Part shown: positions 1,550 through 31,129 of the stretch, piece after piece
Layout: the number at the start of each line of letters is the position of its first letter
Position numbering within the stretch: position 1 is the stretch's first letter
From: Marsupella aquatica
Lineage: Eukaryota > Plantae > Marchantiophyta
Direction of reading: 5' to 3'
DNA: 64,000 nucleotides
NCBI GenBank assembly: GCA_973895155.1
Contig: OZ316899.1
Coordinates: 1,759,573 to 1,823,572, forward strand
The notes under the pieces: generated by a model
Database searches by the model: none
What the model was told of the DNA's origin: nothing
What the model saw: the letters and a program-made list of their open reading frames with translations, nothing else
Position numbers and translations under genes: made by a program

Positions 1550-2205
1550 TTATTCCACGGAACGGTGTCCCGCCTGCTCTTGAACGATGTCGCACACCCC
1601 ACAGCACAGTCTTCCGCCCGCTGTGAAACCACGTCACACACCGAATGGCATACTCTTGGTGTCTCGCTGATCGATGGGGTCAAAAAACCCCACGAAACGG
1701 TGTTCCGCCTGCTCTCAAACCTCTTTGAGAGAATATATAGGACGGATGTTGTTCCGCCCTGGATGAACCTTCATCCAACATCAGGCTGAACGTTGTTCCG
1801 CTTGCTCTGAAATTCAATCCAGCCAAGGAAAGAAAATGTTCACCCCACGCAGGTCCTCAGTTGAACACCTGGCGGGACGGTGTTCCGCCAACTCTGAAAT
1901 TCAGTTCCGCCCAGTAAAGAAAAATCTTCGGCTCAAGGTGAATCTAAGTGGTCCACCCACTCAAATGCACTTCCGCCTCCTCTGAAATTCAGTGCGGGCC
2001 AGGAATCAATAGGGTTCCTCCCAAGCTAAATCTATCTGGAATACCCCACGGAATGCTGTTCCGCCTGCTGGAACAAAATATCCAAAATAGAGTCCGCAAT
2101 AGCATAGCTCTCGAGGGAACAGTGTTCCGCCCGAACCAAGCCAATCACCAAGCTGAAGTTGTCTTCAGCTTGAGTGCAGGTACCCTGCAGAACAGTGTTC
2201 CGTCG
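1550..2205. repeat. Dispersed array of GGAAC-N3-GTTCCG-like palindromic motifs upstream of the F-box-like gene
   Basis: About 10 full or half copies (e.g. acggaacggtgtcccg ~1557, aacggtgttccg ~1695, gacggtgttccg ~1876, ggaacagtgttccg ~2117) separated by non-identical spacers. Confidence 0.75.
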
Positions 2206-2256: not shown

Positions 2257-3122
2257 CTCTCAAGGAAATCTCATGCAATTGCAGACACGGTGGAAAAAGG
2301 CGTTCAGTGTTTCAATAAGTTTTGCGCAACATTTGATAGACATATCACACTCCAGCGTTCTCGTACGCAAGAATACGATCTCTTGGGAAAAAGTCTACTC
2401 CCAGGGCTTCCCAACGAACTCGTGGAGTAGTTAATCTGGAATATATGTCTAGGATCATTTAACACCTTGGCAGATCAAAGTTCATTCTTGGATTCAGAAT
2501 TGAATTCATTTATTTTGATGAGGTCTGTCTCTTGCAGGTGGCGCCACTTGATAAATAATACGTACATCATGGGCGTCCTCAAGATGACTATTTTAGACTT
2601 TCAACCCAAGGAAGCCAAGTTTCCAATTGATTTCATTCTTGCACCTCTTCTCGAACAAACTACCTATAGCTTCTTTCGAAAGTATCCAAAAATTAAATTC
2701 TTGGGATTGATGCCCAAGAACCTTCGAGAAAAATTCACAAAGGCGTATGACTTACTGCATCCCATTGAAAAATGGGATTTTACTCTACTCTGTTACGAAA
2801 CCAGATATCTCAAGAATGGCTTCAAATCTAGATAGAATTTGCTCCTAATAAGTTCCGTTTGATCAATCCGACAGGATGGACGAAGTCTCTAGCAGAGCCT
2901 TGCAGGTCGAGAAGGTTTGCAATCTACTCAAAGATCTTGAGAAAGTGGCAAATTTTGAAAGACGAAGGCTCAATCCCGATTCCCTATACATGGAAGGTCT
3001 GCCAGACAATTTGGTCATTGACAAAATTTGGCCTCTTTTGATGGATCACAGTCTTCAATGCGGAGGACTTGATCAAGAATCATTTGTCTCGAGGACAACT
3101 GCCATGATCAGACTTGCGTCAT
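2257..3122 (+). pseudogene. Tandem two-F-box-like protein, 5' part (split by solo LTR A)
   Basis: SLLPGLPNELVE*LIW...LMRSVSCRWRHLI (TAG 2428-2430) and a second motif EGLPDNLVIDKIWPLL...IRLAS running into the LTR; frame break near 2835-2875. Confidence 0.55.
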
Positions 3123-3612
3123 TGTGACGCGGATGACATGGTCCTTATTCTATAATCTGAGTAAGTAGGTTGCTGTATGCAAGGAGTAGCTATTGATATT
3201 GCATAACAATTAGCAAGCTGGCAAGAATAAGGGCAATCATGGCATTAGAGTAGGGATAAAGGTATTTCAGCTTGAAGACTGCACAACCAAGGCAGACACA
3301 GTTGAGGTAGTCACTGTCAAGGCCACAAAGGAGAAACTGGGGAAGAGAGGATTCAGCTCTTCAAGCATACCATCTTCTTGACAAGCAAGATGGAGCATGG
3401 AGGCTCTTCAAGACGCCGGTACGGAGGTAGGCATGGTAATTCAAGGAAGCAAGTCTCCATAGCTGAATATGAAGTTGTGGGGTATGGTGACTGTGCTCAG
3501 GATGAAATCTAAATGTCTTGGGTGTGTAGCTTCATTTTGTTAGTTAGGTTAGTGGTTCATAGTCTAGTCTTAGAATGTTAGGGAAATAAAAGGCTATGTC
3601 GCGGGTGGTCGG

Positions 3613-5499
3613 TGTAGTTTGCTATGAAGAACCAAAAACACACTTAAAGGTCTTCAAACTCGGTATTCGTTCCCGTAAAGAACAAGATGGGGTTGGTTTG
3701 ATAGATTTAAACAATAATAAAGAACCAAAAATGTTTTCCACACATAGTAATCAAGTTTGATTACTTTAATAAGGTATTTTGAAGATCGCTCCACAGCGGT
3801 GAGTAGTTTTTAATGGTAACTCAGCATTGGGTAACCATAAATTAATGAAAAGGAAATGATTAACCAAACACAAGAGAAAATAATCTCAAAGTACGCTAAG
3901 GGAGTCTGGAATAGACCAAGGTTACTCCTTAGACATAAGTCAAAATGAAAAGACTTAAGGATTCAAATCCATATTGCTTTTCAGATCTAAACTGCTTACT
4001 AGAATACCTTTTAAAATGCCATCAACATGTCTTATCCTTTCTTTCTAAGTGGTACTCAGATAAGATCTAAAAGGTAGCTACTTCAACATTTAGATGGTAC
4101 TAAGTATCATGAAAGAAAATCCATCAAATTCATTAAGACATAAACTCAATGAGTTAACTTTAAGAACTTAGGAATTTGTAATGAGTCACCAAGGAGGAAT
4201 CTGTCATCACAAGATCCAAAGATTTCTTACAAATGCAATTTTACTTCATGTGTTTATGATAAGTGTGTAGAAACACAAGAAGGAGGTAAGTCTCTCCTGT
4301 TATTAAGCCTGATTTAGAACTCATAGGTTCAGAATCAATACTTAACAAGAGGGAGAGGCAAAAATGCACAACTTAACCATAATCTACACTAGTGGTAGAG
4401 TTATCTTATAGTCAAAATCTACCGAATGAGAGGTCACAGGGTCAAAGAGACATGCCTCTTCATACCCTTCAAAAAGTTAAAATGACGATTCAGTAAGTGA
4501 AAAGCCGGAAAAATGGGTTAGTATGAACTCGTAAACTAGTAAGCTAGTAAACTCGTAAGAAGTTTACTTAGCGAAACTCGTAATCGTAAACTAGTAACTC
4601 TTAAACTAGTAAACTTGTAATGCGGTATTCTTAAAGACTTGATGAATTCAACTATTTTTAACTTCCTAACTATAAGTAAAAAAACTCAAAGGTTTTGCCA
4701 GCAGGCTTTCCTAGGTATAGACTATATACTGAAGAAGTATGACAGCTTCCAAAGCTCTAGTATGCATTTATAAAAATCAGATAAGATGCACTACTCTTAA
4801 AACTAACTAAATCACTTAAGACTACTCCTCAAGCTTGTTGTCGGATGTCTTATGGTTCGAGTAGCTCCACTGCTGTGATAGTTCAATTATGTGTAACTTC
4901 CATTAGTTCAGCCTGGCGTGGGGATCTTCGAGAATAGGGTAGGCATCTCAGTTGCCTTTCAGGATACATCAGGGGCATTCTCTTCCTTAGATAACATATG
5001 TCTATTTGAAGAGCTTCTCTATACATCCCAATCACGTCATAATTATTGCAAGTAGCAGCATATACTTGGGGATAATGGTATAGGAATTCATCAGAGTTCA
5101 GCATCCTGGAATAGAAAGGGTGAAGTCTCCATCTGACATCTCTGAAGTACCGGTTGAAGCTGGCCAGAGTTTGAGAGGTAAGGTGGAAGAGAAGTCAGTA
5201 ATGAGCGCCTATGTCTTGCATTCCTTCCCTTTCAAGGTGAGCTCTTCATCCGTTGTGGAGTCCCGTTGAACTAGTCGTAAGATGTCACGATCACAGGGTC
5301 GCCAACTCTTAAGGCGTAACTCGTAAACTCATAAAGCAGTGAACTAGTAAACTCGTAAACTGAGTTTACTCGTAACTTAGGAACTTAGTAACTTTGAATG
5401 CTGTTTCAGTTACAGTTAGCAATAATTGCAGTCTAAACACCGTAAAAAATTTAAATTTTTTTAGTTTCTTCATGCTTTTGGAATTACCCACTACTTACA
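3613..5499. mobile_element. Nested TG...CA insertion, probable solo LTR of a different family
   Basis: TGTAG...TTACA ends; TSD GTCGG at 3608-3612 and 5500-5504; empty site with a single GTCGG in the sister LTR B near 14360-14380. Confidence 0.85.
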
Positions 5500-5664
5500 G
5501 TCGGCGACCATATCTCATTCAATACGTCACCAAATCCGGATCTGTAAAGAGCATTGGAAAGATCTGGTCAAGGTGAGTAAAATAGATATAAAACACTTGG
5601 GAAACAGAGGTGTATTAAGGAAGATATGGCCTGATTAGTGTGACGGGTTAACTTGTGGCCAGAA

Positions 5665-6045
5665 TTAGCGGGTTCGGCTTCGGTTTCGGGTTAACCTAAG
5701 CTCGGCCACGGCTTAGCTTATGTGAGCACGACTTCAGCTTAGCTCATGTAAGCACGGCTTCAGCTTAGCTCAGGTCAGCATGGCTTCAGCCTAGCTCAGG
5801 TCAGCACAGTTTCAGCTTAGGCTTAACCCGGGTTCGGATTAGGTTGATCCCGGGTTAGACTGAACTCGGGTTAGCCTAAACTCGGGCTTGGGTTAGCATA
5901 GGTAAGTTCGGGTTCGGGCTCAGCTTACCCTAGGTTAGTGGATAGCGGGTAGCGGCCTAACCCGAGACCACGGGTTAGCTCTACTCGGGTTAGATAGGAT
6001 AGCTAGGTTAGCCAAACTCGGGTTACCTATGTAACTCGGGTTAGC
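5665..6045. repeat. Minisatellite-like block in LTR A (cttcagcttagctca and ctcgggttag units)
   Basis: Direct inspection of reiterated units. Confidence 0.75.
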
Positions 6046-7791
6046 ATAGCAGTGAGTACCCCCTCTCGGTTACGGGGACATAACTTTCTGTGTATTTGAC
6101 CAAATCGGCTATAATTGACCTCGTTGAAAAGAGGAGCTCAAGCCGCTTCCAATGTATCCACGCAGCAAATGGTTGAATAGAGAAATTGGGAGAGGAGGCG
6201 CAAGCTCGCAAAAACCATGGAGGAGGGCCAAATCCGAAGAACATAGCCAATTCGAGATAGAAATAAAGTTGCGAATTAGGGTTCAGTAGTTAGAGATAGT
6301 GGCGACTCTGTTAGGGCTGGGATGGGGCTCCAACAACGTAGTATCCACCCATTTGGGCTCAGTATGAGAGTATATAGAGCAGCCCCCGGTAGAGGCAGGG
6401 GGGACTTCAGTTGTGTGATCTCACGTAGACTGAGCAGCAGGGAGGAGCTCTGTTCAAGGAAGGCTGGGCTTGGAAGCTGTGTGTTGGGGAGAGCTTGGTT
6501 GTGCTATTACTTAGGGAGTAATCAGCCACGCTTCACAGCAATAGTTGGCCAGGTTTGCAAGCTGGATTGTGGCTCTTTCTAGTAGGCAACACAACTGGGT
6601 TCTTTTCCCCCAATACATAGCCTTGGTGATAGGTGATGTGTTGGTGATTGTAAACTGTGGGGAGGATTTCAATGTGATTTGCGGTGAGCACATTAGGAAG
6701 GCTGAGACACTGATTGAGGGGCAGCAGGAGGAGCATTTACAGTTCAGTCTGGCAAGGCTACGTGATCCATGGGGAGTCCCGGCCTTTGTCTGGTAGAGAG
6801 CACTAAGGGATTTATGGCCAGAGTTGAGCTTGCAGGGCAAGCGTGAGGCCGGGCCTCATTGCAGTTTGGGATAGATTGTCGTTAGGCCTGGTACCAGCTT
6901 TGAAGTCAAGTCAACTGTGCATGCGTAACTTGACGTTCTGAATTGGAGGTGTGAGATCTGTACGTGCCCCCAAGAATGAAGTGCAGTGAAGGAGGTTGAG
7001 TTCAGGATTGAGTTTGCAAGGCAAGTACGGGATTGGTTTGAGTCCAATCTGCCGTTGCAATCTAGAGTGAGTCGGGCTCAGGTTCAGGATTGAGCTTGCA
7101 TGGCAAGCATGGGGCTTGCGGGGCAAGCACGTCGCAATCTGGAGGAGACAGCCTTTGGGCCTATTATTCGGATCAAGTGTTCTCAGTGAACTATTGTGCA
7201 CATCTTTGAATCTAATTGAGTTTTCCTCTCAGGCCTCATTTCTCTCATGGATGTGTGTGTGTGTGTGTGAGGCAATGTGAGTGTATGATGGAACTAGCAG
7301 TGCCACTGAGAGGTGTACCGGGTGCATTGAAGTGGGTTGGGTGAGGGCTGTCACAACTCTAATTGCTGAGAGTGGAATGGCAGAGTGGTGGGGCAATGGC
7401 TTAGAAGTCCCTAAGCCGGGAATCAGTCAGGAGTCACTGGTTTATGGGTACATTCTGGTGGCGGAATAGAAATATACCTGTGACAGTAAGCATACGTATA
7501 GACATATGCGCACCATAGCGCTAGGCCCTGTGTGTACGGGCCCGATATGAAGACCCCTTCTCACCAGAACTATCATGAGCACATGATCTGATTCCCAACC
7601 TTGGTTCTTAGGGATTGAGCTTGGGTGATGTGTGACGGAGTCTTGCTATGATAGTCTGGTGTTAAGGGCATAAACTGGTGTTTACCGGCCTTCACAACAT
7701 CCCTTCGTGATCCTCAGGTACAAGGAGATGGTTTTGGCACCCATAGTGACGTTTTTGGTGTTAAGACCCATGTCAATCGCGTGACAGTCAT

Positions 7792-8054
7792 GCAACAAGA
7801 AGTGGCAATTTTTAGTAAAACTTACAAAATTTTGGTTTGCTCTAATAGAAGCAAACGAGAAAATAGAGAAGATCAACGACAAAATTTCTACCATTCCAGA
7901 AGCCAACCTTTTAACACCGCGCCATCTGCTACACGTCTTTAGAGACAACCTCTACGACTTTCCGAATATTGAGATACTTGGATCACTTCTTCCGGTGGAC
8001 AGTTGCATATTTTGGATGTTGTGGGAAAATTTAATGTTGAGGAGAGGGAAGTAG
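7792..8054 (+). pseudogene. Tandem two-F-box-like protein, 3' part
   Basis: Removing LTR A plus one TSD gives an open join IRLAS|CNKKWQFLVKLTKFW...RRGK* completing the second F-box-like motif. Confidence 0.6.
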
Positions 8055-8243: not shown

Positions 8244-11200
8244 ATGGATTCCACCATGACTTCGTCGTCAAAAAGAAAGGCTGAGTCCAAAACACCCCAA
8301 AGGAATAAAGTTTGGAAGGTGACTCATCGTGACGTTGACATTTCGCTGGGAAGATTCAAGGGGGCAAAAATTCCAAAGGTTTTTTGTGACGAGTCAAAAT
8401 CAGTCCATCCCTTGAAGATGGAAAAATGTCAAAGATGGGGGGTGGTTTGGTACGGAGGATGCCTTTGTCTTTGTGTCAAGACAGAGTCACTCTCCGTAAT
8501 AGCCGACCACAAGATAGTCGGTTTGTTCTTCAAACAAAACCTTGGTCTTGTCGAGTATCAAGAGTGTCTCTACCTATTGCTGGAAGATATCGAGGAGCAA
8601 ACCAAAATTGCTGTTTGCTTGAGACTCCCAGAGTACAACAAGTTTGACCAAGCGGGGATTGACGTGGAGTTGGAAAAGACAGAGAAGTACAAAGATTTCA
8701 CTTCCCACCGCCTACTCAATGAAGACATCCGTTTCCCAATAGCACCAGAAGTAGTTTCCGGAGATACTCTTACCTTCTACTTCACTAGTATTTTTGAGTG
8801 GAGTAAGGAAGATTTTGTTTGAGACTTCATCGTAGGGAGAAAAGGGGAGATCCGTCCGGGAAATCTTCCAGATGAAGTTAACGACAAGAATGCAAAGGGA
8901 ATGTTCAGTAATCTTTTGAATGAATACAAATCAGTGACTTTGTTTGAAGGAAAATCCTTTGAGCTGGCAACACTTCGATGTAAATTAGGACCTGATGACT
9001 ACAAATGCCAAGTCTTTGATCGGAAATATTGTGAAGTTCTAAAGGGGTCAATGATGGGTCATTCTTCCCTCGCACTCGAGAAGACTTGAGTCTACCTCGT
9101 TCCAGTCCAGTGGGATGCAGGCAAAGCTAAGAACGATCCATTCTACAATGGAACTCCCTTCAAGTCTTGACCGACACTTGAAGATGTGAAGAATTGCTAC
9201 TTCTGGATAATTGGAGGACAACATACAATTGAGGCTTACAAATTGCTGATTGCCGATCCAAAATTTGATTCGAAAAAAAAAGAGGAACTCCTCATGGTTA
9301 CAGCCACTCTCTTCTGGACACTGTTCAATCTCGTTGGGAATACAAAGATTATGGGCCTTTCAAAGCTTTGAACAACATGAACAAGGCAACAATGCCAGAA
9401 AGTCAGTTTCTTCTGATGGCAAAGCAAGTCAGGAAAATCTGGGTGTCGGCCGGGAGACCACCATCATTGAGCGGACAAAAAGCAAATTCAATGTGGAAGG
9501 TATGTTAAGTTTTCTTTGACTTGGGGTCATTTGATAAATAATTGCAAGAGCTCAACCCGCGGAACAGTGTTCCGTGGGATCCTGAGATCTTCATTATTCT
9601 TATCTTTCTCACTTTGCTTTCTATATTTGCAGCCATTTTGTGCAGCGGCCCATATTGCGTACCCAACAGCTGTCATGGTCAATGGAAACATGAGATTCAT
9701 TGAGATGGCACCGTTTTTGTTTGAGATGAAGGATGACACGTTTGAGCTCTAGATGGAAGTTCAAAGTCTCTCAGAAGATGGTCTGCTCATCCACTCAAAT
9801 AAAGTTCTCCAGCACATAGCAAAGCCATATCAGGATAGAACAACGTGGCATCTCCGGAGAAGGTTTTTCCGGCATATGCAAGGTCTTGAAGATCGAGATC
9901 TGAAAAAGCTGGCAAAGTATTTGATTTCAAGAGAGAAGGTGTCGCTCTTCCCGAATAGGATGAATGACAAGAATTACGACCCTGTTCAAATGGAAGGGTG
10001 GAGGTCACTTGAGGAGTTTTGCCTCGAGAAAATGAATAAGCGTATTTTTGAATGCATATTTTTGTTGGAGTTCACTGAGAGAAGAAAAATCAACGAATTC
10101 CGCATTTTGAGTAAAGATGAAAGGAAGGAGAAGGTTGCTGATGTTCGCAGCTTTTTCCATATTGATGGGCAGCGGATGCATATGCTAAGGGAGTTGCTAC
10201 CTGCTGGCCTATATCAATCTGGAAGGCTCCACAACATGAATTGGGCAGAACTGATCGATCTTATTCCGACTTCTTTCAAAGGTTTGGTCGACTCAATTTC
10301 AAGATCTGTCGACCGGAACGGAAATTTGCTTGTGGTGAAAAAAAATGATCTGTTTCATTTGCAATCGATTGAAGGGGTTGGAGGGAAGAACTATTTTGAT
10401 GGTTTGTCTCAAACCTATGAGAATACACCGGTGGACCTTTTCTATTTTGATTCGACGAGGACATCTGAGTATGGTCCATACGACCATCATTTCTATCGTC
10501 GGTTTTTCCAAGCAACTTCTACTATTGGAGGTGCGTGACATAAAGTTGTGCTGATAGTCAACCCTTTGGAGATTATTGACGTCATGCAAGGCATCACTCC
10601 AACAAAGAAATACATATGTCTCCCTACCCAACTCACTTTTCGGAGCTCCGAAAAAAACAAAAATGACATCTTGTTAGAAGCAGAATGCCGAAGAACACAG
10701 TATGTCTTGTATTCCTTTTTTGATGAAGCGTTTGTGGCTTTGACGCTTCCCGAAGAAAAGGAGTCATCTTTGAGAGACTCCTTGAGGGGGAAGCTTGCAA
10801 ATTATGACGAAGTCGACGTCGCAGAGAGTCTCAGCGACAAGAAAACTGCCACATATTTTTCTTATCTTGTGAAGCTATTTCTATCCTCTGGTGATTCCGT
10901 TGTTTGTTTTGGCAACAATCGTCGTCTCATCAAATGTTTAATGGTAAGTGTGATTTGTGAATTTATTTAAATTTACATGTTTCTCGCAAGTTTAAACTCA
11001 ATTCAATGACTAATGAACACAATTGATTCTCTGACATAGGGGAATTCTATATCTGTGACAAGTTTCTGCCCTGTCGAGAGCCACAACCTCTTGTCTGACT
11101 ACTTCAATGCGTTGTATCCGTCGTTCAAAGAGCCAAAATGTCCGAAGCGTGAGATATTTGAAAACCTCCTCCGGAGAAAGATTTTGAAGAAGAAGTCAAT

Positions 11201-11384
11201 TTTTGAAGTGAGGGACAATATCCTTGACATCCTCAACGAGAGCTATCAACTCACGGATTGTCAAATAGAGCATGTCATCAAGGAGTATGGGTTACAAGAG
11301 CGGCCTGATAACGATGATGATTGCCTTCTCTACTCCCTTCCTCAGATCCTTCCATCGGGACCTCTTGGCGATAAGTGTTTTTAA
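8244..11384 (+). pseudogene. ~970-aa three-exon protein: ParB/Sulfiredoxin-like domain plus degenerate beta-class N4/N6 DNA-methyltransferase-like domain
   Basis: Frame continues through TGA 8820, 9087, 9168, TAG 9750, TGA 10536 and one frameshift near 9365; phase-0 GT-AG introns 9500-9632 and 10944-11039; motifs YFWIIGGQHTIEAYKLL, PVDLFYFD, KKTATYFSYLVKLFLSSGDSVVCFG. Confidence 0.55.
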
Positions 11385-11439: not shown

Positions 11440-11663
11440 GACAGAACTACGTTCCGCGGGACTACCCTAAATTTGCGGATGGAACGGTGTTCCGCCGGAT
11501 TCTTCTTAAGTCTTTGCTGACGAAACGGTGTTCCGCGCGCTTAGTCGGATTTGCCGACGGAACGCTGTTCCACGGGGTTCTTTGGATTTTTGAACAGAAA
11601 GGTGTTGCACGCGCTGAGTAGCATTGCAGACGGACCGGTCTGCCGCGTGCTTAGTGGGATTTC
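11440..11663. repeat. Degenerate ~37-bp tandem array with CGGAAC-N3-GTTCCG core, left part
   Basis: ggaacggtgttccg, gaaacggtgttccgcgcgcttagtcggattt, ggaacgctgttcca units; continues at 14531 after LTR B. Confidence 0.8.
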
Positions 11664-12935
11664 TGTCACGCGATTGACATGGGTCTTAACACCAAAAACG
11701 TCACTATGGGTGCCAAAACCATCTCCTTGTACCCGAGGATCACGAAGGGATGTTGTGAAGGCCGGTAAACACCAATTTATGCCCTTAACACCAGACTATC
11801 ATAGCAAGACTCTATCACACATCACCCAAGCTCAATCCCAAGGAACCAAGGTTGGGGATCAGATCTGCGCTCATGATAGTTCTGGTGAGAAGGGGTCTTC
11901 ATATCGGGCCCGTACACACAGGGCCTAGCGCTACGGTGCGCATAGGTCTATACATATGCTTACTATCATAGGTATGTTTCTATTCTGCCGCCGGACTATA
12001 CCCATAAACCAGTGACTCCTGACTGATTCCCGGCTTAGGGACTTCTAAGCCATTGCCCCACCACTCTGCCATTCCACTCTCAGCAATCACAGCTATGACA
12101 GTCCTCACCCAGCCCGCTTCAATGCACCCTATACACCTCTCAGTGGCGCTGCTAGTCCCATCATACACTCAGATTGCCTCACACACACACATCCATGAGA
12201 AAAATGAGGCCTGAGAGGAAAACTCAATTAGATTCAAAGATGTGCACAATAGTTCACTGAGAACACTTGATCCGAACACTAGGGCCGAAGGCTGTCTCCT
12301 CCAGATTGTGACGTGCTTGCCCCGCAAGCCCCATGCTTGCCATGCAAGCTCAATCCTAAACCTGAGCCCGGCTCACTCCAGATTGTGACGGCAGATTGGA
12401 CTCAAACCAATCCCGTACTTGCCTTGCAAACTCAATCCTAAACTCAACCTCCTTCATTGCACTTCATTCTTGGGGGCACATACAGATCTCACACCTCCAA
12501 TTCAGAACGTCAAGTTATGCATGCATAGTTGACTCGACTTCAAAGCTGGTACCAGGCCTAACGACGATCTACCCCAGACTGCAATGAGGCCCGGCCTCAT
12601 GCTTGCCTTGCAAGCTCAGCTCTGGCCATAAATCCCTTAGTGCTCTCTACCAGACAAAGGCCGGGACTCCCCATGGATCACGTAGCCTTGCCAGACCAAA
12701 CTGTAGATGCTCCTTCTGCTGCCCCTCAATCAGTATCTCAGCCTCCCTAATGTGCTCACCACAAATCAAATTGACATCCTCCCCACAGTTTACAATCACC
12801 AATACATCACCTATCACCAAGGCTCTGTATCGGGGGAAAAGAACCCAGTTGTGCTGCCCACTAGAAAGAGCCACAATCCAGCTCGCAAACCTAGCAACCC
12901 ATTGCAGCTGTGAAGCTTGGCTGATTACTCCCTGA

Positions 12936-13265
12936 ATCACCCTATTCATTATTTTGTTCACTTTTAGGCCTCGAAATGTACACTTTTTGGTCTCTAAATG
13001 TACACTTTTTAACCCCAAAAGGTATACTATAGTACAATACTCTACACCTAAATAGTCAATTGTAAACTTGAGGGAGAAAAAAATGATCTTTACTAGAAGG
13101 AGTCCATCCTAGTTCATTTATAAAAGATGAACATGGTGGTATGTCTGATGGCCATCACTTTTATTTTTTGCCCAAATGTACACTTTTTGAAAGCCAAATG
13201 TACACTTTCTATTGCCCAAATGTTCACAAATTGAATAATAATTCACTTTTAATGAATAGATTGAT
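12936..13265. mobile_element. 330-bp MITE inside LTR B
   Basis: 16-bp TIRs ATCA(CC/AT)CTATTCATTA (14/16 match); CTGA on both sides; absent at the homologous site of LTR A (~6515-6525); internal aaatgtacactttt repeats. Confidence 0.75.
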
Positions 13266-13839
13266 CTGAGTAATAGCACAACCAAGCTCTCCCCAACACG
13301 CAGCGTCCAAGTCCAGCCTTGCTTGCAAAGAGCTCCTCCCTGTTGCTCAGTCTAAGTGAGATCACACAACTGAAGTCCCCCCCCCCCCCTTGCCTCTACC
13401 GAGGGGCTGCTCTATATACTCTCATACTGAGCCCAAATGGGTGGATACTACGCTGCTGGAGCCCCATCCCAGCCCTAACAGAGCCGCCACTATCTCTAAC
13501 TACTGAACCCTAACTCGCAACTTTATTTCTATCTTGAATTGGCTATGTACTTCGGATTTGGCCCTCCTCCATGGTTTTTGCGAGCTTGCACCTCCTCTCC
13601 CAATTTCTCTATTCAACCATTTGCTGCGTGGATAGCAGCGTTGGAAGCGGCTTGAGCTCCTCTTTCCAACGAGGTCAATTATAGCCGATTTGGCCAAATA
13701 CACAGAAAGTTATGCCCCCACAACCGAGAGGGGGTACTCATTGCTACGCTAACCCGAGTTACATAGCTAACCCGAGTTTGGCTAGCCTAGCTATCCTATC
13801 TAACCTTAGAAGAGTTAACCCGTGGCCTCGGGCTAAGCC

Positions 13840-14205
13840 GCTATCCGTGTCCGCTATCCGTGTTCGTTGTCCGTGTCAGTTGTCCGTGTCCGTTGTCCGT
13901 GTTTGTTGTCCGTGTCCGTTATCTGTGTCCGCTATCTGTGCTTGTTGTCTACTATCTGTGTCCGTTGTCCATGTTCGTTGTCCGCTATCCATTGTCCGTT
14001 TCCGTTGTCCGTGTCCGTTGTCCGCTATCCGTTATCCGCTATCCGTTGTCCCGGGTTTAGTCTAACCCCAATCTAAATCCGCTAGCCACTATCCGTATCC
14101 GCTATCTGTATCCGCTAACCTCTATCCGTATCCGCTATCCGTGTCCGCTAACCTCTATCCGTATCCGCTATCCGTGTCCGCTAACCTCTATCCGTATCCG
14201 CTATC
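13840..14205. repeat. Minisatellite in LTR B (tatccgtgtccg / gttgtccgt units)
   Basis: Direct inspection; source of the Cys/Val-rich spurious ORFs. Confidence 0.85.
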
Positions 14206-14530
14206 CCGGGTTACACACTAACCCGTCACACTAATAAGATCATATCTTTCCTAATACACCCCCATTTTGAGAGTGTTTTATATCGATTTTACTCGCCTTG
14301 ACCAGATCTTTCCAATGCTCTTTACAGATCCGGATTTGGTCACATATTGAAAGAGATATGATCGCCGACCACCCGCGACATAGCTTTTATTTCCCTATTC
14401 TTAATGCCATGATTGCCCTTATTCTTGCCATCTTGCTAATTGTTATGCAATATCAATAGCTACTCCTTGCATACAGCAGCCTAGTTAATCAGATTAAAGA
14501 ATAAGGACCATGTCATCGGCGTCACAATTT

Positions 14531-14678
14531 CCCCACGGAACGGTGTTCCGTACGCTTAGTCGGATTTCCCCACAGAATGGTGTTATGCGCGCTTCATCGG
14601 ATTTCCCCACGGAACGGTGTTCTGCGCGCTTAGTCGGATTTCCCCACGGAACGGTGTTCCGCGCACTTAGTAGGACTT
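14531..14678. repeat. Four 37-bp tandem units ccccacggaacggtgttccgcgcgcttagtcggattt, right part of array
   Basis: Units start at 14531, 14568, 14605, 14642. Confidence 0.9.
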
Positions 14679-14702
14679 GCTGGTTTTGTTAATTAAAACG
14701 AT

Positions 14703-16881
14703 TTGGAACTTACCTACAAAATGATTTGGGTGATATTAGGTGTCGACCCTAAGACGCATTCAAGCAAGAGATTACCTAGTCCATTGAAGAGAATCGATTA
14801 CCACAATGAGGAATTGGAGTCGGGTGATGAGAAAGATGAGGATAAGGAGAATGAGAAATCCGAACGCAAGGAGGAGGCATATGATGATGATGGCGCTGAT
14901 GATGACAAGAACGACGATGACGACGATAATGACTCGCAAAGGGGCAAACAACGTTCCAAATCCAGATGTGATCGTGAAGGAAGCGATTTACATTCTGATG
15001 GGGATTTCGAGAGCGAATCAGCAAATGCAGATTTGGGGAATGAGGTTGGTCACCAGGTGGGGAGAGCGGAAAGTCAGTAGGAGATTCAGAGGATTCTGAA
15101 AGTCGGGAAAGAGAAGCCGAGGTGTTGAGGAAAAAGAAGGTGGAGTTAGAGAAAGAGCTTGAGCTCGCAACAAAAAAACTCAAATTTGACTTGAAGTCTG
15201 CCTCAGAATCAAAAAAGAATGTTGATGAGGGCAAAACTTCAGGGAAAAAAGAAAAAAAAAGTATACGTGTCAAAAAAGAAAAAAAAGGAAACTGAAGAGT
15301 TGGAGAGGAAGGAGCGACAGAAAAAGGAACGGCGGGAGAAAGAGGAGAAAGAAGAGCAAAAGGAGAGAGAGGAAAGGGAGAGGAAGGAAAGGGAGGAGAA
15401 AGAGAAGGAGGAGGAAGAAGAGAGAAAGGATCGAGAGGAGAAAGAGAGGGAAGAGGAAGAACGGAAGCAAAAGAAAGATGACGAAGAACAAGAGGAGGAA
15501 GAGAACAAGGGGGATGAAGACGACGAAGATGATGAGAAGGAAGAGGAAGAACGGAAGAAAAAGAAAGATGACGAAGATCAAGATGAAGGGAAACAAGAGG
15601 AGGAAGACGAGGGGAAGGAGGACGAGGGAAAGGAGGACGAGGTAAAGGAGCAACATGAAGGAGGGAGAGGAAAGAAGCCAAGAGAGAAAAGAGAGAGAAA
15701 GAGAAGAGAGGGAGAGGAAAAAAGCCCAAGAGAGAAAAGAGAGAGAAGAGAGAGAAAGAGAAGAGAGGGAGAGGAAAGAAGCCCAAGAGAGAGAAGAGAG
15801 AAGAGAGAGACAGAGAAGAGAGAGACAGAGAGGAAAGAAGCCCAAGAGAGAGAAGAGAGAGAAACAGAAGAGAGAGAAAGAGAAAAGAGGGAGAGGAAAG
15901 AAGCCCAAGAGAGAGAAGAGAGAGAAAGGGAAGAGAGGGAGAGGAAAGATTCAGAAGAGAGAAAAAGAGAAGAGAGGGAGAGGAAAGATGCAGAAGAGAG
16001 AAAAAGAGAAGAGAGGGAGAGGAAAGAAGCCGAAGAGAGACAAGAGAGAGAAAGAGAAGATAAGAAGAGGAAAGAAGCAGAAGAGCGGGAGAAGAATGAA
16101 GCCGAAGAGAAGGAGAGGAGAGCAGCTCAAGACAAACAAGAGGAGGAGAGGAAAGATGCAGAAGAAAGGGAAAGAGAAGAGATGGAGAAAGAAAAAAGGG
16201 TTGATAGTGAAGGGAAGAACATGATTGAAATTAGTGGAAAAGAAGATGGAGAGTGGTCGCCGGATGCGCTCAACAATGAAGCAGACGAGTTCATCCATTT
16301 ATCAGCTGACAATACGAGCTTGGACATGGCGACGGACATGCAATGCGCAAATACTTTAAGGGAGTTAAGACTCCCTTTTGGGGGACGATGCTTGAAGAAA
16401 CAAAAGTTATCCAATTTGGAATCTTCAAAGCAGAAGCTCAATTTTGAGGATTGTTTAATGAAAGACTTCGTTATGCCGCGGAACGCTGTTCCGCCGGACT
16501 CCTCTGCACTGGTGGACGTTGATTCAAGTTTTCATGGGACTGGAAAAGAGACACTGTCGGCATCAGATTTGAAAGCCATAAACTCAAGAACAAAGTCTGC
16601 TTCTTCACGAGTTCCAAAGGTACAATTTCTATAATTTTAGTGAAGCTTTAGGCGGTTTCAACTATTCTCGAACGAATAGGTTGCTAAATTAAACTTTGAT
16701 TTTGCAAATAATGCCTCTTACATTATCTGAAAGTAGCGAGAGGTTGATAGACAATTGCCTCAGTCTATCCTTGGATGATAGAGAGGTTTTGACCACTATC
16801 GATGACATCGACATCACTCGTAACGTTATGAAATCTCTCCGTCCACGATACTGGCTGGCTTTGGATATTATTAATGGATAC
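14703..16881 (+). pseudogene. Ulp1/C48 SUMO protease gene, 5' part: acidic/charged low-complexity N-terminus and start of catalytic domain
   Basis: ORFs 14703-15080 and 15219-16634 (frameshifts in A-runs); probable donor at 16620; then EVLTTIDDIDITRNVMKSLRPRYWLALDIINGY, resembling the ESD4/ULP1a DIT...LRP..WL.D.VIN.Y block. Confidence 0.75.
15255..16205 (+). repeat. Almost purine-only (A/G) tandem-expanded tract encoding E/K/R repeats
   Basis: Repeated gagagagaaagagaagagagggagaggaaagaag-type units. Confidence 0.85.
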
Positions 16882-17027
16882 TGTTAAACATCACAATAAC
16901 TCCAACAGTTTTACTCATTCAATCCCTTCATATACATAGTCGGTTGTCTAGGTGGTTGGTTGTATAACCGTCATGGGTTAGGGTTTTAGTCCTAACCTTA
17001 GGTAGACATGTTCTAGGGGTTGCAACA

Positions 17028-17037
17028 CTCCCCCTTG
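17028..17037 (-). promoter_or_regulatory. Polypurine tract of the copia element
   Basis: CAAGGGGGAG (minus strand) abutting the 3' LTR. Confidence 0.85.
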
Positions 17038-17641
17038 GATACATCTTTGTTATAGAGAAGATGTAGACATTTAAAGTCTACCTTGGCTATCTATTGGGGA
17101 ATTGAGTTGTCTTCTAGTTTATTGTATGGTAGGGGTATAGTATGATAAAAAGAAGGTGGGGTGTAACCTCATTAAAACCTCCCCTCCTTTCTTGTGGGAG
17201 GAAAGAGTGTTACCACCCGTCCCTTTGTTGAGTCAGGTTTGTCTAAGTAAAAGTGTAAATGTATAAAATTGTCTTAACCTAAATGTTATTGGAAATTGTT
17301 TGGTAGTGTAAGGTGGTAAGTAGTTTGTAGGGTTGTCGTTGCAGTCGATTAGGTTGGTGCTGTGTTGTAGTGGTTTTGGTTGTCACGGAGGTGCTGCATC
17401 GATCGTCTTCGTGCATGGTATTGCTGTCTGCTTCTGCGGAGTTGAAGTAATCACCATATCAGTGATTCATGAAGTCTGTGTTGGTCTTCTGGTGAGTTCA
17501 TCGGTGGTGCGGTGAGCTGGATTGTTGATTGGTGATGCTGGTCGATTTGAGTGTAGTGCCGCAGTTGGGTCTTCGGGGAGCAGTGTCGTCTGTCTGGGAG
17601 CTGGAGGTAAGTGCGCGCTCCCCCTGAGTCTTGGAAGGTCT

Positions 17642-20600
17642 TTATGTGGTTTGCTTCTCCTGTGACAGTTCCAAAAGGCTATACATTCCAAGTAATCGGA
17701 TTAGTGCCTTATGTAGTACTGGAGGTAGAGATTTTGTGAAGAGGTCTGCAGCGTTCTTCGAACTCGGGATCCATTGGACGTTAATTGTGTCGCCATGTTG
17801 TTCCTGTGTAAAGAAATTTTTTGGGGAAATGTGTTTTGTCTTGTCACCTTTGATGAATCCTGCAGAAATTTGTTCTATGCATGGTCTGTTATCTTCGTAG
17901 ATGACAGTAGGGGAGTTGAGTTTAGGTTTACCTGTGGTTTCTGTAATTGATTACATTCTGTAACCAGATGCACTCGCGGCTCGCCTCATAGAGTGCAATT
18001 ATTTCTGAGTGATTTGAAGAAGTGGTGGTAAGTGTTTGTTTTGTGCTTCGCCACGAGATAGCTGTAGGTCCGATTAGAAAGACGTATCCGGTCTGAGATT
18101 TGGCGTCCGTAGTGTCGGATAAGTACCCAGCGTCAGCATAGCCCGTTAGCGTGATGTCTGCTTCATTGTAGTAGAATAATCCAAGATCAATGGTGCCATT
18201 GAGGTAACGGAATATACGTTTAATCCCGTTCCAGTGTCGGATCGTGGGTTGTGAGCTATACCTGGCTAGCAGGTTGACTGCGAAAGCGATGTCAGGTCGG
18301 GTCTGTGAAGATAAGAATAGGAGTGCGCCAATAGCCGATAAGTATGGCTTCTCGGAGCCAAGCAGTGGCTCCTCTTCATTTCTTTTCCGGAAAATGTCTT
18401 TATCTCTGTCGAGAGAACGTATGTCCATTGGTGACTTGACTGCCTTTTTGTTATGCATATTGAATTTCTTTAGCATTCTACGTGTATATGTAGATTGGTG
18501 GAGTAGTACTCCGTGTGGTAGGTATTCGAATTGCAATCCGAGGCAGAATGTAGTTCTGCCTAAATCTCTGATCTCGAACACCTTGTTCAGTTGTTTGATT
18601 GTATCTTGCAGGACCTTGGTGTTCCAAATAAATTCAAGTCGTCCACGTATATTGCTACTATGATGATCTCTTGTCTTTCTTGTTTGATGAATAAGCATGG
18701 TGAAAGGTCTGAAGTTTTGAAACCCATTGCCATCATCTCTGTCTTAAAATGTCTGTACCAGGTACGCCCACTCTGTTTGAGTCCATACATGGATCTGAGG
18801 ACTTGGACAGCAAGTCGGTTCCGAGCAGTAAGTGTTTTCGGATCTGTTCCCTGTGTAGCAGGGGCCTTCCAAGAGATTGCTTTGGCGGTAGTGTGTAGCA
18901 CTTTCTTGTTTGTGTGGCCAAAAGGGCCTTCATTCTTGGTGGGAGCGTTTTGTAGTCTGTGCTCCCCCTGAATATGGTAATGAACTCTGGTTAGTAATTC
19001 AGGAGGGGCTTCCATGTAAATGATGGTATCAAGATGTCCATATAGATAAGCAGTGACTATGTCAAGTTGATGCATTGTCAATTTATGATGTATTGCGAAT
19101 GCTATCAAGTATCTATATGTGATCACGTCCATGACAGGTGAGTAGGTCAGGTCGTAATCTCTGCCGGGTATCTGGGTAAATCCTTTGGCCACTAGTCGTG
19201 CCTTGTATCTGACTATTTCACCTTCTGCATTCCTCTTTTTGACGAATGTCCATTTGTATCCGGTGAGGTGAGTATCAGGAGTTACTGGCGTTATGGGTCC
19301 GAATACTTGTCGGGAAATCAGGGAGTCCAGTTCTGAATTGACTGCCTTCTGCCATTCCTGCCAATCATGTTGTTTTCTCGCTTCTGCTATGGTTAAGGGA
19401 TCAGGCGAGTCCTCCATCATTGCTGTTGATATTTGGAATGCGAATGTGTTGTCTGGTATTGTGGTGGGTCTATTATGGATTTCGCCTGTGTAGTTGTAGT
19501 TAATGGCTATTTCTTCGTTCTCTGTCGGGGTGGTCTGTTGGGCCCTCCTCTGGCGAGGATGTTTATCCGCGGCTCCAGGAGGTCTTCCTCTTTTCTTGCG
19601 CGGTTCAATGCTTGTGGCTGGCTGGTGGTCCATATTGATTCTAAATGGTGCGTTGGTAGCTGGGTTATGGGATCTGGTCACTTTAGCAACATCTGCGAAT
19701 GCATCGGGTAATTCTTCCATAACTCGAGTAAGGTGTAGTATTCGTTGTACCTCTGTATCTGTTTGGGAAGTTCTGGGGTCGTTCCAGAATTGGGAGTTGA
19801 TTTGCCAGGCTAGTAGTTTGGTGGCAGGTTCTGATGTTTTTGGTGTGGTGTTTAAGGCTGGGAATACTGTCTCATAGAAGTGGCAATCGGCAAATCTAGC
19901 TTTATATACGTCAGCAGTTGTAGGTTCTAGGTATCTAATAATGGATGTGGAGTCGAAACCTATGTAGATCCCCTTCTGCCTCTGGGGTCCCAGTTTAGTC
20001 CTCTTGGGTCCCATTATGGGAACCAGGACCTGGCAACCGAATGTTCGGAGGTGTGCCAGGTTAGGTGAGATGCCAAATGCAAGGTGGTGTGGGGAGCTCG
20101 TGTTAAAAGCAGATGGCCTGTATCTAAGGAGTGAAGCAGCATGTAGGATGGCGTGGCCCCAGGCAGATGATGGGAGACTGGTTTGCATGAGGAGTGGCCG
20201 AGCTATTGTTTGTAGATGTTTAATGAGGGATTCTGCAATCCCATTTTGGAAATGAACGTAGGCTACAGGGTATTCAACCTCAATCCCAGATGCAATGCAG
20301 AAGTCATCGAATGTCTGTGATGTGAATTCTCCCGCGTTGTCTACTCTTAATGTTTTGATGGGGTAGTCGGGAAATTGTGCTTTTAGGCGCAGGATATGGG
20401 CTAAGAGTCGGGAGAAGACTAAGTTGCGTGTTGAGAGGAGGGAGACCTGGGACCATTTTGATGAGGCATCAATGGTAGCTAAGAAGAACCTGAAGGGTCC
20501 GCTTGGGGGATCGACGGGGCCGCATACATCCGCATGTATTCGCTCGAGGAATTTGGGGATATTCTTGTCTGTTTTGGATGGGGAAGGTCTCATTGTGAGT

Positions 20601-22189
20601 TTTCCCTGTGAGCATGCTAGGCAACCTGGGGATCGGATGGATGTTGGGTGTACTGAGGTGGGTATTCCCTGCGTGTCTTTGAGGATCTTATGGAACATCT
20701 GTGTGCCTGGGTGTCCCAGGCGGCGATGCCATGTTTCGGTTATAGTCTGTGGAGGGGTCTCATTGAAAAAGGTGTGGATTCTAATGGCGTAGAATCCCAA
20801 TGGAAAAGCTATCAGGGTCTCTTTTATTTCTATGCCATTCTTGGTCTTGGCCACGATGTGTAATACTTCTTGGGATTCGTGGATGCTGGTGTGGATGTGC
20901 AGGCCGTTCTCTCGGATGTCCTTGAAACTCAAGAGGTTACGTGTGGCCTTCGGGGCGTATATTGCAGATTTAATGTGTATAACCGTGCCCTTGGGCAGGA
21001 CCAGGTTGGCTGGGCCATTGCCCTCTTCTAGCTGATGGTTGCCCATAATTGTGGTAACTCTCCGTTGGGAGGGTACGATCTGGGTAAAGTAAACTTTGGT
21101 TCTTAATATTGAGTGTGAGGTCCCGCTGTCTAGTATGCAGTAATGAGGGTCATCCAGGGCTTTAGACATTTCGGATTGGAAGGCGAGGTGAAGTTCGGGT
21201 AAGATTTCTGGAGTTTCTAGGAATGCTCCATGTGTCTCGTATTCATCATTATGTAAGTTCTTTTGGTATAGCGCGACGAGGTGTGTTGGGGCCCGGCAAG
21301 TTTTCCTGATGTGGCCTTTAGTTCCGCACCTATGGCAAATTGGGGGGTTGTCTGACTTATCTGTGTGGGCGTTCTGCCGTTGTTGATTGCCGTTGTTTCT
21401 TGGCCAGTTGTTGCGAAAGGTTCCTGATTGCGCTCTGCCCCGACCCCTTCCTCCGCGGTAATTGCTCCTTCCGCCCCGTTGGAAATTGTTGCCTCGTCCA
21501 TGGAAGTTATTCCTTCCACGATAGCTACCTCTGCCGCGATATGAGGTGCCAGAGCCTCGTCTCCATGTATTGAAGTGTGTTTCAGGATTGGTCTGTGGAG
21601 GTAGGGTCCCGGGAGGTCGCCGCTTGGTGTTCTGTAATAGCAGAATTTGATACTTCTCTGCTAGCAACATGTGGGCGATCAGTTCGAAGTATGTTGTGAA
21701 TCTCATGTTGCGGTATTGTGTGGATAGTACTAAATTGGTTGAGTGAAATGTTGACAGGGTCTTTTCGATTTGTTCCTCTTCATCGACCGGGTGGCCACAA
21801 ATCGCCAATTGTGATACAATTCGGAAAAGTTCGTTGTTGTACTCAGCGATCGTCTTGTGGTCCTGTACCCGGAGATTAATCCAGTCGTGCCTCGCTGCTG
21901 GGAGGAAGATCGTGCGCGTATGGTCGAATCTTGCATGGAGCTCGTCCCATAGAACTCGGGGGTTGTAGGCATTCATATATTGGCGTTTTAGAGAATCGGC
22001 AAGGTGGTGTCGAATCAGGATCAGGGCCTTCGCCTTCTCCTGTAGGGTGGGGCCATTGTCTGTTAGGATTGTATCTTCTAGGTTCTTTGATGTGAGATGC
22101 GCCTCGACATCCAGTGTCCATGATAAGAAATTTGATCCGTCTATACATAACGCTTGGAAATACAGCTTCTCAATCGCATTTGTTGTCAT
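17642..22189 (-). pseudogene. Copia gag-pol polyprotein with two frameshifts
   Basis: ORF 18587-22189: CHRCGTKGHIRKTC knuckle, ILDSGTSH protease, WHRRLGHP/DNAGEF integrase, YGLKQSG and YVDD RT; frameshifts near 18620 and 17940; RH ends at 17642. Confidence 0.92.
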
Positions 22190-22481
22190 TGTATTCAGTG
22201 ATGAGCGTAGATTCGGAGGGTGATTGTGCAGATCCGTCTCTGCTCAGCGATATGTTGTGATGTGTAACGTTCACCGGGTGAATCTGCCTCGAATTGTAAT
22301 TTATGGGATTGTTGTCAAGAGTGTATGTTGTTCATCTGCAATCATCTTCCTTTCGTCAAATCGTGGGTGGGTCGGGACGGAATCGGGAAAAAAAACTTTT
22401 GGTCTTCAAATTGAAAAAAAATGGAATTGGGATCGGTCTGCACTCGTACTGTAGGTCGGAAAAAAAATCTCAGGAGTACAC

Positions 22482-22495
22482 TCGTGCTGATAACG
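22482..22495 (-). promoter_or_regulatory. PBS complementary to the anticodon arm of tRNA-Ile (half-tRNA priming)
   Basis: CGTTATCAGCACGA directly after the 5' LTR; complement TCGTGCT-G-ATAACG matches the plant tRNA-Ile arm UCGUGCU-A(I)-AUAACG as recalled. Confidence 0.65.
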
Positions 22496-22646
22496 TGTTA
22501 AACATCACAATAACTCCAACAGTTTTACTCATTCAATCCCTTCATATACATAGTCGGTTGTCTAGGTGGTTGGTTGTATAACCGTCATGGGTTAGGGGTT
22601 TAGTCCTAACCTTAGGTAGACATGTTCTAGGGGTTGCAACAGATAC

Positions 22647-23159
22647 TTCATTTTACTAAAGAAAAAAGAGATATCTTCAAGATGTCATTTTTTCAACACA
22701 TGGTTTTATGGTAAACTCACCAAGAACATATATTGTTATAGTCCGTGCATATCAAGATGGTCCTCAAGACTAGGATATAGCTTGTTCGACTGTGAGAAAG
22801 CTTTTGTACCAATTCTCCACAACTCTCATTGGAGTCTTGCTGTCATTGACTTCAAGAAAAAGAGTTTAAAATATTTAGACTCCTTTCATAATGCAGATTC
22901 TAAAGTCCTAGACAATTTGTGGCGGTATATTTTAGACAAAGCAAAAGATAAAGGATTAGCTTCTTTTGATATTAATGGTTGGAGCCGATCCTTTCCAAAA
23001 GATATTCCAAAATAGGAGGATTCCTATAATTGCGGAATGTTTGTAATTATGTTTGGATATTGTGAAAGTTTAAGAAAACCATATTTGTTTCATTGGAGTA
23101 GTCGAAGTGAAAGTAGACGTGAAGTAGTTCTCCAATTAATGCGTAAAAATATTAGTTAG
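22647..23159 (+). pseudogene. Ulp1/C48 SUMO protease gene, 3' catalytic part
   Basis: In frame across the copia TSD: NGY|FILLKKKEISSRCHFFNTWFYGKL...VPILHNSHWSLAVID...IPK*EDSYNCGMFV; His/Asp/Cys present, TAG 23013-23015 where Gln is expected. Confidence 0.88.
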
Positions 23160-23288
23160 GCTATTATGGTCAGACTTCATTTTATAATACATTCCCAAGT
23201 GAAATGTTTAATGAAATTGACATCGTAAATACGGGTTGTTACATAATTATGTGAGTAATATTTTGATGGTTTGTTTTATTTGGTACAG

Positions 23289-23972: not shown

Positions 23973-24205
23973 TTACAAGTAGAAAGTAGCTTACTTTATA
24001 GAGGAGTGGATTTTAGTTCCCTCTTAGATGCACAATGTACTATTTGATTAAAATAAAGTAATATTTTGACTATTTTTGTAATTATCTCAAATCTATGTTC
24101 GTTTCAATTCTGTCTTGTTCAGTATCTGTGGTAGTAAATTGGTTATTACATTTGTTGCACCAAATTGAATGTGTGTGCACAAAGAAAGTAACATTTAAAC
24201 ATGAG

Positions 24206-24265
24206 TGTGATAAAAGAGGTTGCATTGATCATTTAAGCGACAAGTTTACTAATTGTCGGGCACAT
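24206..24265 (+). other. Isolated C-x4-C-x10-C-x2-H zinc-finger-like motif
   Basis: CDKRGCIDHLSDKFTNCRAH within ORF 24095-24286. Confidence 0.3.
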
Positions 24266-24787
24266 AAACACAAAACAACCAATTGAGGTATATTCCCTAA
24301 TTATCCCTTGGACTTCCCCGGATCCTTCCCGCACTCCCGAAGAGCTCCTGAACGGCTCCTGACCCTCCCCCGATCTTGGCCCAGACTGCTCCCAAACCCA
24401 TGCCGGCGAGGAAAACTCCCGAATAAGGTTGCCTGCTTGACGTTTCTGAGGATGTTTTTTGCACAATTTCATGCCTGGGCAAGGTCCAACCAGGATTCAA
24501 TATCTTTAATTAGCACGAATCTGACTAAATCTTATGCCCAGAAATGATATTTTGAAGCTTTTCGGGACTGCTACCAAAAGACTGAAATGAAAGTTAAGTA
24601 AATTGTTGTTTATAATTATATTAAATCAAATTAAATATAAATATAATATATAAATGCATTTGAGAATTTCTGGAAATAAAACATTACACTATTGTTTAAA
24701 TTAGTGTTACATGGACTTTGCATCCGAAATGGCTTTCTCCATCTGGTTGAACGCTCCTATGATCTTCTTGGAAAACTGTCAAACACT

Positions 24788-31115: not shown

Positions 31116-31129
31116 TTCACTGATACTAG

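Follow-up and report, generated by a model that had tools for sequence, protein, structure and literature searches.

Accessory genes that combine a ParB-like domain with a DNA methylase have been noted briefly on eukaryotic transposons, so far in algae alone, and are assumed to methylate the element that carries them. The Sola1 element of Ectocarpus (Sola1-1_Ec32) encodes a 1104-amino acid (aa) protein that contains a ParB-like domain and an N4/N6 methylase, and such ParB-methylase proteins have been proposed as a possible new accessory class that binds and modifies its own transposon (PMC12477816). In the Plavaka elements of Bostrychia, PAG2 joins a PF01555 methylase to a SET domain and PAG3 joins a ParB-like domain to a 2-oxoglutarate (2OG) oxygenase, with arrays of inverted repeats adjoining PAG3 (10.1101/2025.02.11.637652). 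Dam-type methylases fused to ParB and helix-turn-helix domains have also been described in chlorophytes by Iyer and colleagues (PMC4738411). For liverworts and other land plants, our literature search retrieved no paper describing genes of this kind. In this work we analyze a gene of this type at positions 8244-11384 of a 64,000-nucleotide stretch of the liverwort Marsupella aquatica (assembly GCA_973895155.1, contig OZ316899.1, positions 1,759,573 to 1,823,572 of the forward strand), hereafter the window. We put forward, with a probability of roughly two in three, that this gene is one of the repeated copies of a liverwort-type accessory gene, and a dead one, that its intact relatives encode a four-part, non-catalytic DNA-recognition protein of ~970 aa, and that the cassette in which it lies behaves as the cargo of a large DNA transposon.

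The intact protein is predicted to consist of a PH-like N-terminal domain, a domain with the ParB/sulfiredoxin (Srx) fold, a helical domain and a permuted beta-class methyltransferase fold. This liverwort-type family has kept a methylase shape under purifying selection for a long time without the catalytic loop, paired with palindromes that differ between lineages, and this combination suggests that the role under conservation is to recognize DNA and not to modify it. The window copy itself is a fossil with no function of its own, and the intact protein and its palindrome constitute a simple, testable pair.

The gene lies on the forward strand and comprises three exons (8244-9499, 9633-10943 and 11040-11384), separated by two phase 0 introns with GT..AG boundaries (9500-9632 and 10944-11039); in relatives, gene predictions run on through the donor of the second intron. 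The exons contribute 419 + 437 + 114 = 970 codons, and the reading frame closes with a TAA at 11382-11384, a stop whose position is similar in three relatives (L001, L002 and L010). An initial annotation of this DNA, made from its letters alone, had described a frame of ~970 aa with two phase 0 introns. The structure stands, but the frame is interrupted by five in-frame stops that the annotation did not mention (TGA at 8820, 9087 and 9168 in exon 1 and at 10536 in exon 2, TAG at 9750 in exon 2) and by a one-base frameshift near 9363-9368. The frameshift can be detected because the intact relative L001 reads through that point of the alignment in one frame and the window copy needs two. An alternative genetic code in which TGA is read as sense was considered and ruled out, since a TAG and a frameshift are also present and in L001 each of the five stops is matched by a sense codon (Arg, Ile, Met, Trp and Gly); the stops must accordingly reflect decay. 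With five stops and a frameshift the window copy is unable to make the protein, and it is a pseudogene. For this reading frame all searches were conducted by piece, using either the nine stop-free pieces of the window gene or single exons. The short motifs quoted in the initial annotation were all located in the window, with FDRKYCEVLKGSM at 9015-9053, VYLVPV at 9090-9107 and YFWIIGGQHTIEAYKLL at 9198-9248 in the ParB-like part, and PVDLFYFDST at 10428-10457, HKVVLIV at 10539-10559 and GDSVVCFGNN at 10890-10919 in the methylase-like part.

A HMMER search with a 261-aa piece of exon 2 (9753-10535) against 1.84 billion proteins returned 16 matches, the best with E = 5.6e-76 and 50% identity, a value that places the gene far beyond chance. 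Every match bearing a name belongs to the leafy liverwort Calypogeia fissa, where it is labelled as an 'unnamed protein product', and the remainder derive from sequencing-run assemblies. The best match sits on L001, a 4.9-kb contig whose copy is intact, has the same three-exon structure with introns at matching positions, and is ~50-72% identical to the pieces of the window gene. The position of intron 1 is conserved in L001, L002, L008 and L009, and both intron positions are kept among relatives at ~30% identity. Calypogeia harbors at least five loci of the gene (L002, L007, L008, L010 and the gene of P0016), and stops were found in all three that were inspected closely (L007, L008 and L010). 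A comparison of the window with L001 shows saturation at synonymous sites (proportion of synonymous differences, pS, 0.76-0.89) and a proportion of nonsynonymous differences (pN) of 0.15-0.41, which suggests that the family has long been maintained as a protein even though the window copy is dead. From this sequence comparison, the family appears to be conserved as a non-catalytic protein.

The domains of this protein were not apparent to sequence profiles. Pfam, NCBIfam and PHROGs yielded no significant match on the nine stop-free window pieces, Pfam detected neither ParB nor methylase on ten relatives and the intact L001 exons, and sequence and profile searches of the PDB with the alignments of exons 1 and 2 gave no match. 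Folds were modelled with AlphaFold on the intact relative, exon by exon, from alignments of 17-19 family rows. The model of L001 exon 1 spans 381 aa with a predicted local distance difference test (pLDDT) score of 74, and the end of the exon is modelled at low confidence (pLDDT 35-45). Its residues 5-158 (L001 971-1450; window ~8355-8815) form a putative PH/PTB-like beta sandwich, whose structural matches consist entirely of PH/PTB domains with weak Z-scores of ~5, and which has no Pfam match; this PH-like domain of ~150 aa is conserved across all lineages.

The second domain of the exon 1 model (residues ~194-346; window ~8937-9392) is predicted to have the ParB/Srx fold. In a structural search independent of Foldseek, the top seven of 48,161 PDB chains were all ParB/Srx proteins (PadC, KorB, the free serine kinase SerK, Atu1540, Arabidopsis Srx, pNOB8 ParB and SbnI), with Z-scores of 6.1-8.1, and the top eight Foldseek matches were all ParB/Noc (probability 0.80-0.99), led by 7BNR. 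We accept this assignment, despite middling Z-scores, because the list of matches is uniform. At the sequence level, no ParB profile of Pfam or NCBIfam matched the window pieces or the intact relative at E-values up to 1-10, and the sole profile signal was a match to PHROG 1033, 'ParB-like', with E = 0.094, on the segment containing GGQHT. This segment belongs to the putative core motif of the domain (strand, GGQHT, helix; YFWIIGGQHTIEAYKLL), which was delimited at 9198-9248 on the forward strand through alignment to L001, P0018 and L002 and the exon 1 model. By eye and by its position in the secondary structure, GGQHT lines up with the canonical motifs of ParB (GERR) and sulfiredoxin (GGCHR). 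The motif is present in all members, as DGQHT in L009, with the histidine kept and the arginine replaced; the phosphate-binding arginine motif of ParB/Srx has no counterpart, its arginines being replaced throughout the family.

The model of L001 exon 2 comprises 431 aa with a pLDDT of 79. Its first part is a helical domain of ~210 aa (residues 1-210 of P0001; window ~9705-10335) that lies between the ParB-like and methylase-like domains and is modelled at a pLDDT of 85-93. A search of the ESM Atlas with this helical domain gave no usable match. We observe separately that it could hold a DNA-binding helix-turn-helix. All structural matches of the exon 2 model are confined to residues 211-421 and leave the helical domain outside. 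This second part, which starts at ~10335 in the window and continues to the end of exon 2 (10943), with its remainder and a C-terminal tail encoded by exon 3, is predicted to adopt a permuted beta-class methyltransferase fold. Among 48,161 chains, the 11 best matches are without exception beta-class DNA amino-methyltransferases of the PF01555 type, with Z-scores of 11-13.7, and the beta-class matches include CcrM, M.MboIIA, M.BceJIV, EcoP15I Mod, M.RsrI, M1.HpyAVI, M.PvuII and the rotifer N4CMT. They are followed by MT-A70 proteins (Z 8.3-10.8) and then by generic Rossmann methylases (Z <= 7.5). The strand bearing motif IV comes first (model residues 242-248) and the strand bearing motif I last (398-401), and model confidence is high around both.

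At the position of motif IV (10428-10457, forward strand), the strand is followed by FDST instead of DPPY in the window copy. Among the ten sequences that cover the site, nine have D-[SGCAT]-[ST] and one, P0006, has YAS, so that relatives read FDGT, FDST, LDCS, LDST, FDSS, LDAT, LDTS or FYAS, and a Pro-Pro-aromatic sequence occurs in none. At motif I (10890-10919, forward strand) the strand is followed by CFGNN in the window copy, and by CFGEG in most relatives; the variants IFGEG and CFGKG likewise keep G-x-G, and P0005 has CFSEG and L002 CFGAC. Judging from these alignments, FxGxG is lost in the window copy and partly kept across the family. In exon 3, the acidic residue that would be expected to follow strand 2 shows no conservation. 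A PF01555 profile failed to match the window pieces, the related sequences P0001-P0016 or L001 exon 2 even at E = 10, and the PDB profile search found no methylase. In every amino-methyltransferase known, it is the Pro-Pro-aromatic sequence of motif IV that holds the flipped base. The most fitting interpretation of the family is a pseudo-methylase that was retained for its shape, and, as DPPY is absent in every member seen and GGQHT lacks the arginine, it most likely constitutes a non-catalytic DNA-recognition protein.

These results bear on most of what the initial annotation had proposed for the protein. Its ParB/Srx pattern is borne out by both structural searches on the L001 model, and its beta-class order, with motif IV preceding motif I, agrees with a methylase fold that matches CcrM, MboIIA, RsrI and PvuII at Z 11-13.7. 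The loss of DPPY holds for every relative, and the paralogues retaining DPPY that it had suggested seeking were found in 0 of 10 sequences. The loss of FxGxG, given as a feature of the gene, holds for the window copy (CFGNN) and not for the family, most members of which have CFGEG. It had also named the PF02195 and PF01555 folds as those to be sought with profiles or structures: structure recovers them, Pfam profiles do not reach significance. The prokaryotic derivation that it favored is not sustained, because none of the searches (Pfam, NCBIfam, PHROGs, HMMER over 1.84 billion proteins, PDB profiles) uncovered a sequence-level link to any prokaryotic protein, and the proposal draws only on the class of the folds and on the fact that phages are known to be rich in ParB-methylase fusions.

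The surroundings of the gene are marked by a palindrome, GGAAC-N3-GTTCC, which occurs 16 times in the window with at most one mismatch, against 2.1 occurrences expected, and always within the cassette; its fuller form is ACGGAAC-N3-GTTCCG. An upstream array at 1559-2201 contains seven copies with 0-1 mismatch. One copy lies in intron 1 (CGGAAC-N3-GTTCCG at 9560-9574), four copies ~37-41 bp apart directly follow the gene at 11443-11571, three more in 37-bp units continue this 3' array at 14537-14660, beyond an inserted element, and a further copy is found at 16479-16493. The same motif recurs in close relatives, upstream of the gene (L001 813, L005 1394), in intron 1 (L005 2811) and just past the stop (L001 4012 and 4127). 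In Calypogeia, paralogues L002 and L010 do not have the window motif; they carry instead CGAACC-N2-GGTTCG, 27 and 8 times respectively, on both sides of the gene, with zero occurrences expected. The association between gene and palindrome is strong in two lineages. It is not universal, since no recurrent palindrome was found around L007, L008 and L009. As the palindromes of both lineages begin and end with CpG, their recognition could depend on cytosine methylation.

With later insertions removed, the palindromes and the gene form part of a co-oriented cassette, in the order palindrome array, F-box-like genes, ParB gene, palindrome array, E/K-rich open reading frame (ORF), Ulp1 and NIF-like gene. 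One or more F-box-like genes lie directly upstream of the ParB-type gene in the window and in the relatives L001 (222-728) and L005 (161-1317), and the L001 copy matches Pfam F-box at 6e-5. In the window, an F-box-like stretch at 2362-2595 (forward strand) precedes an F-box-like gene, also on the forward strand, whose first part (2996-3122) is interrupted at 3123 and whose remainder lies at 7787-7988; its residue 73 ends at 3118 and residue 75 resumes at 7791. Downstream, the remnant of a Ulp1/SUMO-protease (C48) at 22782-23015 (forward strand; Pfam 9e-11) is parted from the gene by a Copia insertion, and a Ulp1 is also found downstream of the gene in L009. A gene resembling NIF/C-terminal domain (CTD) phosphatases follows at 23271-23972 (forward strand; Pfam 1e-10), and the Calypogeia paralogue L002 is likewise followed by a NIF-like gene (15176-16710), so that two distant lineages share this neighbor. 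The window copy of the NIF-like gene may be another pseudo-enzyme, since it has DMDAF where DxDxT is expected. The window gene is better described as a decayed member of a multi-copy, transposon-type cassette than as a single host gene.

Beside the Calypogeia paralogue of L010, an ORF with DUF7869 (Pfam 5.8e-38) lies on the minus strand at 15943-17070. A 551-aa ORF with no family match also adjoins this paralogue and may, together with the DUF7869 ORF, represent a transposase region. A search of the window for relatives of the ORFs that lie beside paralogues, including DUF7869, found none.

The window locus has been extensively remodelled. The gene is flanked by two inverted copies of a terminal inverted repeat (TIR) element, a feature absent from the initial annotation; they are 92-94% alike, non-coding and 2.9-4.7 kb long. 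The left copy (3123-7786), with ends TGTGACGCG... and ...CGCGTGACA, is bounded by a GTCAT target duplication at 3118-3122 and 7787-7791 and contains a further 2.2-kb insert at ~3257-5499. The right copy (11664-14526) is an independent insertion in the opposite orientation, bounded by an ATTTC duplication at 11659-11663 and 14527-14531, and splits the 3' palindrome array with its 37-bp units. The possibility that their 2.3-kb inverted repeats were the ends of an element carrying the gene was rejected, since these are two independent TIR insertions, each with its own 5-bp duplication, and one of them splits the F-box-like gene. A Copia element with 99% identical long terminal repeats occupies 16882-22641, and remnants of Gypsy-type pol and gag (27965-31115 and 55103-58483) fill much of the remaining window. 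Analyzed by its sequence, the window locus is a fossil cut by two TIR insertions and one Copia, in which nothing expressible is predicted to remain. Searches for tRNA genes and Rfam families in the window found none.

Additional repeats were observed in the same region. A long ORF at 14703-16634, between the palindrome array and the Copia insertion, is very rich in E, K and R and contains internal periodic repeats of 9-15 nt; low-complexity stretches that resemble it are found before Ulp1 in L009 and after the gene in L001 and L002. A tandem array of at least 18 units of 13 nt (TGTCCGTTGTCCG type) lies at 13835-14200, inside the right TIR copy.

We propose that the intact protein would bind the lineage-specific, CpG-ended palindromes that flank its own gene and occur in intron 1. 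By analogy with ParB loading at parS, it might thereby mark its own element or recruit partners to it, acting for the carrier element perhaps together with the F-box-like, Ulp1 and NIF-like products. A more ambitious version of this scheme, which we advance as an unlikely speculation, would make the protein the reader half of a eukaryotic self-recognition system resembling parS/ParB: it would read a private, fast-evolving, CpG-ended palindrome and recruit to its own transposon partners of the F-box-like, SUMO-protease and CTD-phosphatase-like types, so that the transposon would escape silencing or be licensed for transposition, with protein and palindrome co-evolving. Several observations weigh against the proposal of a transposon-borne DNA-recognition protein. 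Neither fold has sequence-profile support in Pfam, NCBIfam, PHROGs or PDB profiles; the models come from shallow alignments (17-19 rows) of a relative and were built per exon; and the ParB Z-scores (6.1-8.1) are only middling. Three paralogues (L007, L008 and L009) are not accompanied by a recurrent palindrome. No transposase, terminal repeats or target duplication of a host element was identified in the 64-kb window, and a comparison of 1-2400 with 14500-34000 for terminal inverted repeats of such an element returned the palindromes alone; for this reason, the designation of the gene as transposon cargo draws on copy number, decay, synteny, the DUF7869 ORF and analogy. The palindromes, finally, may instead be subterminal repeats bound by a transposase.

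We rank this last explanation as the main rival to palindrome binding by the ParB-type protein, and consider it unlikely. Under it, the palindromes would be the subterminal sites of a transposase, in the style of CACTA or Mutator elements, and the protein would do something else, such as anti-silencing, in which it would act with its F-box-like, Ulp1 and NIF-like partners on silencing proteins or chromatin of the host and not recognize the palindromes. Short subterminal repeat arrays are, as is generally known, usual in large plant DNA transposons; the largest array of the window (1559-2201) stands upstream of the F-box genes instead of adjoining the ParB gene; and both the degenerate arginine motif (GGQHT) and the paralogues with no recurrent palindrome fit a protein with another task. 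The arrays nevertheless hug the gene on both sides in two separate lineages, and in one of them also enter the intron, the published algal cases exhibit the same adjacency to ParB-type accessory genes, and binding to palindromes close to its own gene is classical behavior for a ParB protein. It is improbable that the family consists of ordinary, possibly domesticated, multi-copy host genes and that the window copy is a pseudogene stranded among transposons. Long-term purifying selection would fit a host gene equally, as would a window with no transposase or element ends, but the many decayed copies in Calypogeia, the conserved cassette that includes Ulp1, a domain often carried by plant transposons, the private palindrome arrays that flank the gene, the DUF7869 ORF adjoining L010 and an architecture matching published algal transposon accessory genes all argue for mobile cargo. 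We attach still less credence to the notion that only the window copy is dead and that the family remains an active N6-adenine or N4-cytosine methyltransferase with a non-canonical catalytic loop. The methylase fold is intact and confidently modelled at the strands of motifs IV and I, most relatives keep G-x-G at motif I and an Asp in first place at motif IV, and bacterial-type N4 methylation has been reported from a liverwort (10.1101/2021.02.12.428880); against these stand the missing Pro-Pro-aromatic sequence in 10 of 10 sequences, the silence of PF01555 even at E = 10 and the lack of a conserved acidic residue after strand 2.

Compared with described systems, the liverwort-type family that we infer here resembles the ParB-methylase fusions of phages, plasmids and prophages, and CcrM, M.RsrI and M.MboIIA, in fold and in permuted motif order; these provide the best structural matches (Z 12-13.7), and long alignments were obtained with phage methylases of the size found in ParB fusions. 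The prokaryotic enzymes are active, with DPPY, FxGSG and clear Pfam matches, whereas in the liverwort family the genes contain introns and the proteins lack DPPY, include an additional helical domain of ~210 aa and show no detectable sequence similarity to them. The MT-A70 proteins METTL14 and MTA9 offer a parallel of another kind, a permuted amino-methylase fold with degenerate catalytic motifs that is kept for substrate binding. Their structural scores are lower, however (Z 8.3-10.8), and they function as heterodimers with an active subunit, of which none is known for the liverwort protein.

The likeness to Bostrychia PAG3 extends to the manner of detection, since its ParB-like domain is also recognized by remote homology only, and the best HHpred match reported for it, 7BNR, is the top Foldseek match obtained here. 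Tandem inverted-repeat arrays adjoin the ParB-type gene in Bostrychia, as they do in two liverwort lineages, that of the window, L001 and L005 and that of L002 and L010. In the red alga, however, different proteins carry the ParB-like and the methylase domain, each combined with other partner domains, whereas in liverworts they are joined in a single protein whose methylase is predicted to be a pseudo-enzyme. The Ectocarpus protein of Sola1-1_Ec32 is alike by description, with the ParB-like region preceding the methylase, a similar size, a setting in a large eukaryotic DNA transposon and proposed binding to its own element. The liverwort family differs from it in its land-plant host, its PH-like N-terminal domain, its F-box-like, Ulp1 and NIF-like companions and a window with no transposase. 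For the Ectocarpus protein, N4mC or N6mA activity is predicted, and the liverwort family has no catalytic loop in any member: it represents a catalytically dead, land-plant variant of an already known type of transposon accessory gene.

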